Assembly: GCA_051294905.1 (NCBI GenBank)
Contig: CM119373.1
Location: 6,944,001 to 7,008,000, forward strand
From: Botryllus schlosseri
Lineage: Eukaryota
DNA length: 64,000 bases
Reading direction: 5' to 3'
Shown here: in pieces, positions 53,094 to 53,607 of the stretch
Layout of the letters: every line of letters starts with the position of its first letter
Numbering within the stretch: position 1 is the first letter of the stretch
Position numbers and translations under genes: made by a program
The notes under the pieces: model-generated
The model's input: the letters and a program-made list of their open reading frames with translations, nothing else
Database searches by the model: none
Told to the model about the DNA's origin: nothing

Positions 53094-53280
53094 ATGACCT
53101 GGTGCAGGGCGGCTTACACTTGGCAAACGCGGAGTTATGCCATTTTGTGGTTTGGACACCAACAGAACTGTTGGTCGATAGAATACCTAAGAAAAGTGAT
53201 TGGGAGAACAATTTAATTCTCTTGAGAGACTTTTATAGGAATACCTTTTTACCTCTCCTGCTATCGCTTGAACTCTGAGA

Positions 53281-53415
53281 GTCGGCAAGGAATCGACCAA
53301 AAAAACTGCGGCCAAAAAGCCCTAAGCGAAGAAGACTCCCGTCGAGAAAGACGTGGCCAAGAAATCGGCAAATGTCAAGAAGGCTGCCAAAAAGACCTCA
53401 GCCAAGAAGAAATGA
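53281..53415 (+). pseudogene. Histone H1-like C-terminal tail fragment
   Basis: [43 protein letters not shown]: Lys/Ala/Pro-rich and GC-richer than the flanks. Confidence 0.6.
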
Positions 53416-53450
53416 ATGCTGGCGTGTGTCGTCAACACCTCCACCTCCAA

Positions 53451-53585
53451 AGTGATGGCGTCTCTAATGACGTTTTCGAGGAATACCTTCAGCACACCTC
53501 TGGTCTCTTCGTATATGAGTCCTGAGATACGCTTCACTCCGCCACGACGAGCCAAACGACGGATGGCGGGCTTGGTGATTCCCTG
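53451..53585 (-). pseudogene. H4: Histone H4 internal fragment (45 codons)
   Basis: [45 protein letters not shown] matches canonical H4 except V>I near the end; no start, tail or C-terminus. Confidence 0.97.
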
Positions 53586-53607
53586 GTACATACTATAAAT
53601 AAAATAA

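Follow-up and report, generated by a model that had tools for sequence, protein, structure and literature searches.

How do pieces of two different histone genes come to lie between the two genes of a DNA transposon? The question is raised by a locus of Botryllus schlosseri within a window of 64,000 nucleotides (assembly GCA_051294905.1, contig CM119373.1, forward-strand positions 6,944,001 to 7,008,000), and this whole stretch is what we call the window, its positions being counted from its first letter. A first-pass annotation, made from the letters alone, had described fragments of histones H4 and H1 captured within an ISL2EU transposon, referred to here as element A. The observation is confirmed and its borders are refined: histone fragments lie between the convergent stops of a SWIM-YqaJ remnant and a transposase gene.

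Host-gene capture by cut-and-paste transposons is well documented in plants, while animal cases have been catalogued only recently. The animal Pack-TIRs comprise 370 catalogued elements, most of them single-copy, and show gap filling with microhomology (Tan et al. 2021, PMC8277862). Capture by gap repair and template switching has been proposed and tested both for these elements and for P elements (PMC8277862). ISL2EU elements carry a THAP/HTH-DDE transposase together with a YqaJ exonuclease (PMC9179366). Fragments of two host protein-coding genes were transduplicated into Turmoil-1, an animal DNA transposon of C. elegans (PMC2572040).

Sequences compared

Contigs of three public runs (X1, X3 and X7) and the raw reads of a fourth (X35) were compared with positions 52950-55350. 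Run X3 is labelled a marine metagenome and is independent of the assembled individual. Run X35 is bulk RNA from a library that is not stranded, and about 6% of its reads were sampled. A Logan contig may in principle pass from a captured fragment over into the parental gene, and contig depth is not equal to copy number.

The carrier element

Element A is bounded by a pair of terminal inverted repeats (TIRs) that encloses both of its genes (Table 1). A truncated copy nearby has a terminus, at 56397-56421, that matches the inner 25 nt of the left TIR as well. One X7 contig joins the flank from 55308 onward to other sequence, which places the end of element A at about 55307; the right flank, 55308-55350, is itself repeated. 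The superfamily makes a 2-bp target duplication, and AT is present at both ends of element A, equally readable as part of the repeat.

Table 1. Features of element A and its histone cassette, in window positions
Feature	Positions	Strand	Remarks
Left terminal inverted repeat	49369-49398	+	30 nt, 97% complementary to 55285-55314
SWIM-YqaJ remnant, 5' part	49740-50634	+	tblastn blocks; exon borders putative
Nested non-autonomous element, putatively hAT-like	50635-53093		2459 bp; TIRs of ~540 bp (97%); 8-bp target duplication
SWIM-YqaJ remnant, last coding block and stop	53102-53278	+	ORF; alignment to relatives
H1-type histone fragment	53281-53444	+	~44 final codons, stop, 29 nt of 3' UTR
Filler CTCCA, 5 nt	53445-53449		Internal H1/H4 junction; repeats 53439-53443, 6 nt upstream
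Histone H4 fragment, codons 27-71	53450-53586	-	Translation; PDB search; host contigs diverge exactly at both ends
Remnant of the element's own spacer	53587-53607		AATAAA on the + strand at 53598
Transposase exon 2 (THAP end, HTH_Tnp_4, DDE_Tnp_4)	53608-54825	-	Pfam; stop 53608-53610; acceptor site putative, at about 54825
Transposase exon 1 (first 41 THAP residues)	54952-55074	-	Pfam; aligns to N-termini of fish homologues; splice sites putative
Right terminal inverted repeat	55285-55314	-	Inverted match to left TIR

The transposase is of the DDE_Tnp_4 type with THAP and HTH parts, as in ISL2EU. Pfam covers the whole of DDE_Tnp_4 (PF13359, 1-158 of 158, E 6.5e-43) and reports HTH_Tnp_4 (PF13613, E 3e-16), with THAP (PF05485, E 2.3e-07) in the upstream exon. 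Read across the putative intron, the protein would have about 446 residues. Over its whole length it can be aligned with fish and insect homologues that bear a THAP domain (45-50% identity), its C-terminus and stop being at the usual place; fishes, insects and marine metagenomes all contain relatives, at 45-67% identity. The protein databases have no entry for the exact protein, and the best relative in them is 67% identical. From the domain matches and the homologue alignment the transposase gene looks intact, as had been claimed. A fusion of H4 to the transposase frame was considered and rejected, because the C-terminus and stop align with those of the homologues.

The plus-strand partner had been presented as a YqaJ gene, and this part of the annotation has to be revised: judged by its alignments, it is a remnant of such a gene and not an intact one. 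In its 5' part a first coding block extends to about 49922, a SWIM zinc finger follows at 50337-50510 (Pfam SWIM on 50250-50546), and a C-terminal block occupies 50548-50634. Of the catalytic core nothing is left between about 50511 and 50547, short tandem repeats mark the junction of this deletion, and Pfam found no YqaJ domain in element A. By tblastn, alignment to the YqaJ proteins of element B, a neighbour in the window, and of L001, a marine metagenome contig, is confined to the SWIM finger and the final ~80 codons (50548-50634 and 53102-53248). The last block is 49% identical to the C-terminus of the L001 protein and 37% identical to that of element B. As regards autonomy, the element has an intact transposase reading frame and a defective YqaJ partner. 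An intron-like gap of the remnant holds, at 50097-50188, one copy of a 92-nt direct repeat (88%) of tRNA-like look, which recurs at 7707-7798 and may be a SINE.

The remnant is split further by the nested element, whose target duplication, ATGACC(A/T)G, stands at 50627-50634 and 53094-53101. Its empty site is found in run X3, where sequence ending at 50626 is joined directly to 53094. In run X1 the arms of the nested element have a summed depth of about 90,000 where the host element has about 200, and this enormous depth indicates a very abundant family. Pfam found no domains in the ORFs of the nested element. Its termini begin TAGGGTTG.

The histone cassette

Histone-derived sequence fills almost all of the 330 bases between 53278 and 53608. 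The only non-histone spacer left in the window copy is 2 nt on the YqaJ side (53279-53280) and 21 nt on the transposase side (53587-53607). On the plus strand, 53281-53412 translates to a Lys/Ala-rich tail that is interrupted by a premature in-frame TAA at 53323-53325 and ends at a stop at 53413-53415; the fragment is cut ~8 nt short of the point where the host gene has its stem-loop. Relative to host transcripts, this part shows the changes K to stop, K to E, A to D and A to V. Against PDB sequences the tail, a short and low-complexity query, gave zero matches, and the H1 label is drawn from its composition, its C-terminal position and the stem-loop of the host gene. The fusion to H4 lies 29 nt past the H1 stop and passes through the 5-nt filler.

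On the minus strand, 53585-53451 translates to Q27-T71 of histone H4 with V70I as the sole replacement. Among PDB chains this fragment has 94 H4 matches (E about 2e-22), with 42 of 42 residues identical to solved H4, so that the 45 codons of essentially invariant H4 reported at first stand as described. A comparison of synonymous sites with the host had been proposed: the fragment and the dominant host H4 of run X1 share ~97% identity and differ at four synonymous third positions and by V70I. Four differences out of four at third positions would have a chance of ~1% if changes were random, so the differences are probably letters of the parental paralogue and not the product of decay.

The H4 fragment is sense to the transposase gene, the H1 fragment is sense to the YqaJ remnant, and each is antisense to the opposite gene, in agreement with the strands first assigned to H4. 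The cassette occupies the position where native poly(A) signals would be expected. A pattern search and Rfam found no histone stem-loop in the window copy, and the cassette region has a predicted secondary structure that does not stand out (z -1.6). There is no complete histone frame, as H4 is present in codons 27-71 only and H1 as a tail with an internal stop. A working histone from the cassette, which the first-pass annotation had called unlikely, is ruled out.

The H4/spacer junction creates a minus-strand ATG at 53589-53591, two codons upstream of H4 Q27. It opens an 89-codon frame (H4 27-71 plus readthrough of antisense H1) within a 144-aa ORF at 53322-53756; this frame is probably accidental.

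Parental genes in the host

In the DNA and RNA runs, host H1 and H4 sequences continue beyond all four breakpoints. Host H1 sequences match 53281-53444; upstream they continue into further Lys/Ala-rich coding sequence, and downstream of 53444 they reach a canonical histone stem-loop (runs X3, X7 and X35), which bears out the description of the plus-strand piece as an H1-like tail with its stop. Host H4 contigs leave the window exactly at 53450 and 53586, and their continuations give the expected codons, TEHAKRKTV past one breakpoint and RHRKVLRDNI past the second. Host-derived DNA thus lies inside the TIRs, and the parental genes are still present outside the element, a configuration shared with the Pack-TIRs. 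Both fragments are host-histone DNA within a TIR-bounded ISL2EU-like element, and the capture inside a transposon that had been proposed is upheld.

The 64-kb window contains no other histone-like coding sequence or stem-loop, and the flanks of the element are not histone. The earlier suggestion that the element targets histone repeats finds no support in these surroundings, and insertion of the element into a histone cluster was rejected as a candidate on the same ground. A pair of tail-to-tail elements with residual host DNA between them was rejected as well, because the TIRs enclose both genes and relatives have the same convergent order.

Other copies, with and without the cassette

Run X3 holds DNA ~98% identical to element A at a flat depth of 23-29, with host H4 at a depth of 94. 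One contig of 1119 nt runs from the YqaJ remnant, here without the nested element, across 53279-53281 and through H1 to 53444. Past that point it continues for 375 further nt, beginning with the stem-loop, where 30 of 30 letters equal the host H1 mRNA end. It shares with the window the T at 53323, which makes the premature stop, and the G at 53344, where all host sequences have A. A second contig, of 403 nt, starts with 53 nt of extra H4, passes through 53450-53491, lacks 49 nt, and resumes at 53541-53848, which takes it across the H4/transposase junction; at 53550 it has A like the window, where the host has T. Both contigs are at the depth of the transposon (23-29) and not at that of host H4 (94). 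The internal H1/H4 junction is absent in X3, as both pieces continue into more histone sequence.

Since both outer junctions occur in an independent sample together with shared derived letters, the cassette is real outside the assembled individual. The X3 cassette appears to be longer than that of the window, and a contig walk into the parental genes is argued against by the equal depths and the shared derived letters. Because the X3 pieces run on at the internal junction, the H1/H4 fusion of the window looks like a later internal deletion and not like a primary chimera. Of the chimeric capture from a histone cluster that had been suggested, the origin from a cluster is plausible, and the chimera as the primary event looks improbable. 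In run X1, a contig of 102 nt also spans the H4/transposase junction (53515-53614), with 28 nt on the far side, just under the 31-nt rule.

Other relatives have no cassette junction. A 991-nt transposase contig of run X7 is 98.8% identical to element A (11 differences in 932 nt), and its match ends at 53585, followed by 59 unmatched letters; at the opposite end it adjoins the neighbouring contigs by exactly 30 nt, which places the 59 loose letters on the cassette side. The X7 contigs of element A may be RNA or contaminating DNA. Relatives at 91-94% identity have cassette-side ends at 53601-53609 (X1 record 2, about 94%; X3 record 13, 91%), so that the contigs without the cassette share window sequence down to 53585-53609. 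The 67% identical relative, represented by marine metagenome contigs L001-L003, also has the genes in convergent order, with no histone-like sequence between them, and element B, whose transposase is 44-48% identical to that of element A, has no histone DNA. As the cassette junction is missing in close and distant relatives alike, the cassette arose in a young sublineage and is not a trait of the family. Whether copies have it in common, a question posed with the first description, is thus answered in two parts: the X3 copy and the X1 junction contig share it, and the 98.8% contig of X7 and the 91-94% relatives do not.

The X1 junction contig has a depth of 16, the lowest class, against 50-86 for the transposase body; such depths are not copy numbers and lean to few cassette copies. 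Among the compared contigs and reads, none showed the flank of a second cassette copy, and viral contigs gave no match by protein or by a 40-nt junction pattern. A JGI metagenome contig (L004) recovered with a 20-nt H4/transposase junction pattern was rejected, as it shares those 20 letters only and blastn found nothing more; the contig is taken for bacterial, and a 20-nt pattern is too short for a collection the size of the JGI metagenomes.

Origin and fate of the insert

The reading that we favour, and hold to be likely, is that a segment of a host histone cluster was captured as repair filler, in the manner of a Pack-TIR, by a young ISL2EU element and is now a decaying passenger. A stretch of the cluster comprising the 3' part of H1 and a part of H4 would have been copied into the short spacer between the convergent transposon genes, each piece sharing the sense of the transposon gene behind which it lies. 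The most likely route would be error-prone repair of a double-strand break or of an excision gap, through template switching or filler capture. We infer this mechanism from the anatomy of the junctions alone; the repair-type signatures of element A are the deletion of the YqaJ core with its short tandem (slipped) repeats and the templated 5-nt filler at the internal junction. From the behaviour of the assembly graph, the contig ends at 53585 (X7) and 53614 (X1) might faintly hint at a 2-nt overlap (GG) at the H4 junction. The primary insert would have been longer than that of the window, contiguous, neutral and without function. In the window copy a later internal deletion would have fused the H1 3' UTR to H4 codon 71/72, with the loss of both histone 3' ends. 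Decay is also seen in the premature H1 stop, common to both copies, and in a different deletion, of 49 nt, in the other copy. Element A has lost its YqaJ core as well and, in the window copy, has received the nested insertion. The shared H1 stop, the differing deletions of the two copies and the lost histone 3' ends together look like the marks of neutral passenger DNA.

Several other accounts of the cassette have to be weighed against this one. Histone genes and the transposon are both repeated, which invites misassembly, and the window's A at 53351 and T at 53354 are found in no X1 contig. An artefact in which histone reads were chimerically joined into the transposon is nevertheless scarcely credible, given both outer junctions with shared derived letters in the contigs of an independent sample and the H4/transposase junction in X1 besides. 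A different issue is whether the cassette-bearing element has transposed and spread histone fragments through the genome as a multi-copy Pack-type family. We regard this as possible and somewhat doubtful. Intact TIRs and an open transposase ORF speak in its favour; the 64 kb are free of histone genes, so that the copy stands away from the parental ones; and the X3 copy could be a paralogue, from which the window copy differs by about 2% divergence, the nested element and two deletions. About 2% divergence plus indels is, however, ordinary allelic variation in marine invertebrates, so the same differences would also fit alleles. The junction contig of X1 also falls in the lowest depth class and the X3 parts share one flat depth, depth not being copy number, and a flank of a second cassette copy has not been seen.

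Two further accounts give the insert a role. The geometry of the locus would permit convergent transcription to yield antisense H4/H1 RNA, or small RNAs acting on host histone mRNAs or silencing the element, since each fragment is antisense to the opposite gene, and between the H4 piece and the dominant host H4 the identity is about 97%. The sampled RNA speaks against it. In X35, 89 of 89 reads at 53323 and 61 of 61 at 53344 carry the host letters, no cassette-derived read was seen at these diagnostic sites, and depth on the transposase and YqaJ parts is zero, in a library that is unstranded; the fold, too, is unremarkable. A regulatory by-product of this kind is very improbable, and the small-RNA source or silencing decoy proposed at first is left unsupported. 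Somewhat less remote is a functional 3'-end module, in which the contiguous insert gave both transposon genes sense histone 3' UTRs with a stem-loop and the window copy is a dead derivative. Processing of the transposon mRNAs would then follow that of replication-dependent histone mRNAs, and their expression would fall in S phase. The H1 piece lies sense behind the YqaJ remnant and the H4 piece sense behind the transposase gene, the H1 piece of X3 reaches a complete stem-loop (30/30 as in the host), the H4 piece there extends towards the 3' end, and the insert sits at the expected site of native poly(A) signals. We nevertheless think it improbable: the orientation has a one-in-two chance, the deletions in both known copies and their shared H1 stop are as expected without selection, the YqaJ partner is already defective, X35 has no transposon transcripts, and the H4 stem-loop is seen in no copy. 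The specific expectation that undeleted relatives carry the contiguous segment, with both histone stem-loops sense behind the transposase and YqaJ genes and with mRNA made and destroyed in the S-phase manner, is decidedly improbable. If it were true and the long form supplied histone-type 3' ends, the transposon would have captured a cell-cycle switch, a means of timing expression that would be new among transposons.

Relation to known systems

Capture of a histone-cluster segment as repair filler, the reading preferred here, places element A close to the animal Pack-TIRs (PMC8277862) and the plant Pack-MULE and Pack-TYPE elements (PMC8903248). In all of these, host genic DNA lies inside a DNA transposon with TIRs, the parental genes persist elsewhere, and the junctions look like products of repair or template switching. 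Unlike them, element A is not an empty shell and keeps an apparently intact transposase gene; its insert lies exactly between two convergent genes and comes from two histone genes, each sense to the gene that precedes it. With the ISL2EU elements (PMC9179366) it shares the DDE_Tnp_4 transposase with THAP and HTH, a convergent partner of SWIM-YqaJ descent and the TIRs. It departs from them in that its YqaJ part has lost the catalytic core and is interrupted by the nested element, and in that histone DNA makes up almost the whole spacer. Like Turmoil-1, element A is an animal DNA transposon with pieces of two host protein-coding genes; in Turmoil-1 these are conserved and placed within the terminal repeats, whereas those of element A lie in the intergenic spacer and are decaying.

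In the open-access texts covered by the search no mention of ISL2EU carriers or of histone inserts was found. The case is one of Pack-TIR-type transduplication in an ISL2EU carrier: the type of event is known, and this superfamily and this cargo were not found described in those texts. It offers a clean and young animal case, in which an ISL2EU carrier with an open transposase, the parental genes, copies without the cassette junction, and two differently decayed derivatives are visible together. Element A could serve as a small case study of how captures arise and erode.

Neighbouring elements

Beyond the right end of element A lies a truncated second ISL2EU copy (55587-56421), with a THAP exon at 56225-56070 and transposase residues 76-150 at 55820-55587 (50% identity). 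The 25 nt at its terminus are identical to the TIR of element A, and the adjoining 300 nt are merely 77% identical. Element B (56404-61913) has a full SWIM-YqaJ ORF of 359 aa (PF09588), which starts directly at the terminus of the truncated copy and has a frameshifted tail at 57381-57629. Its convergent transposase is represented by remnants at 58461-57891 and 61913-61587, split by an insertion with inverted ends at 58461-58764 and 61306-61608, and this insertion contains a DDE_Tnp_4-like stretch at 59916-60344.
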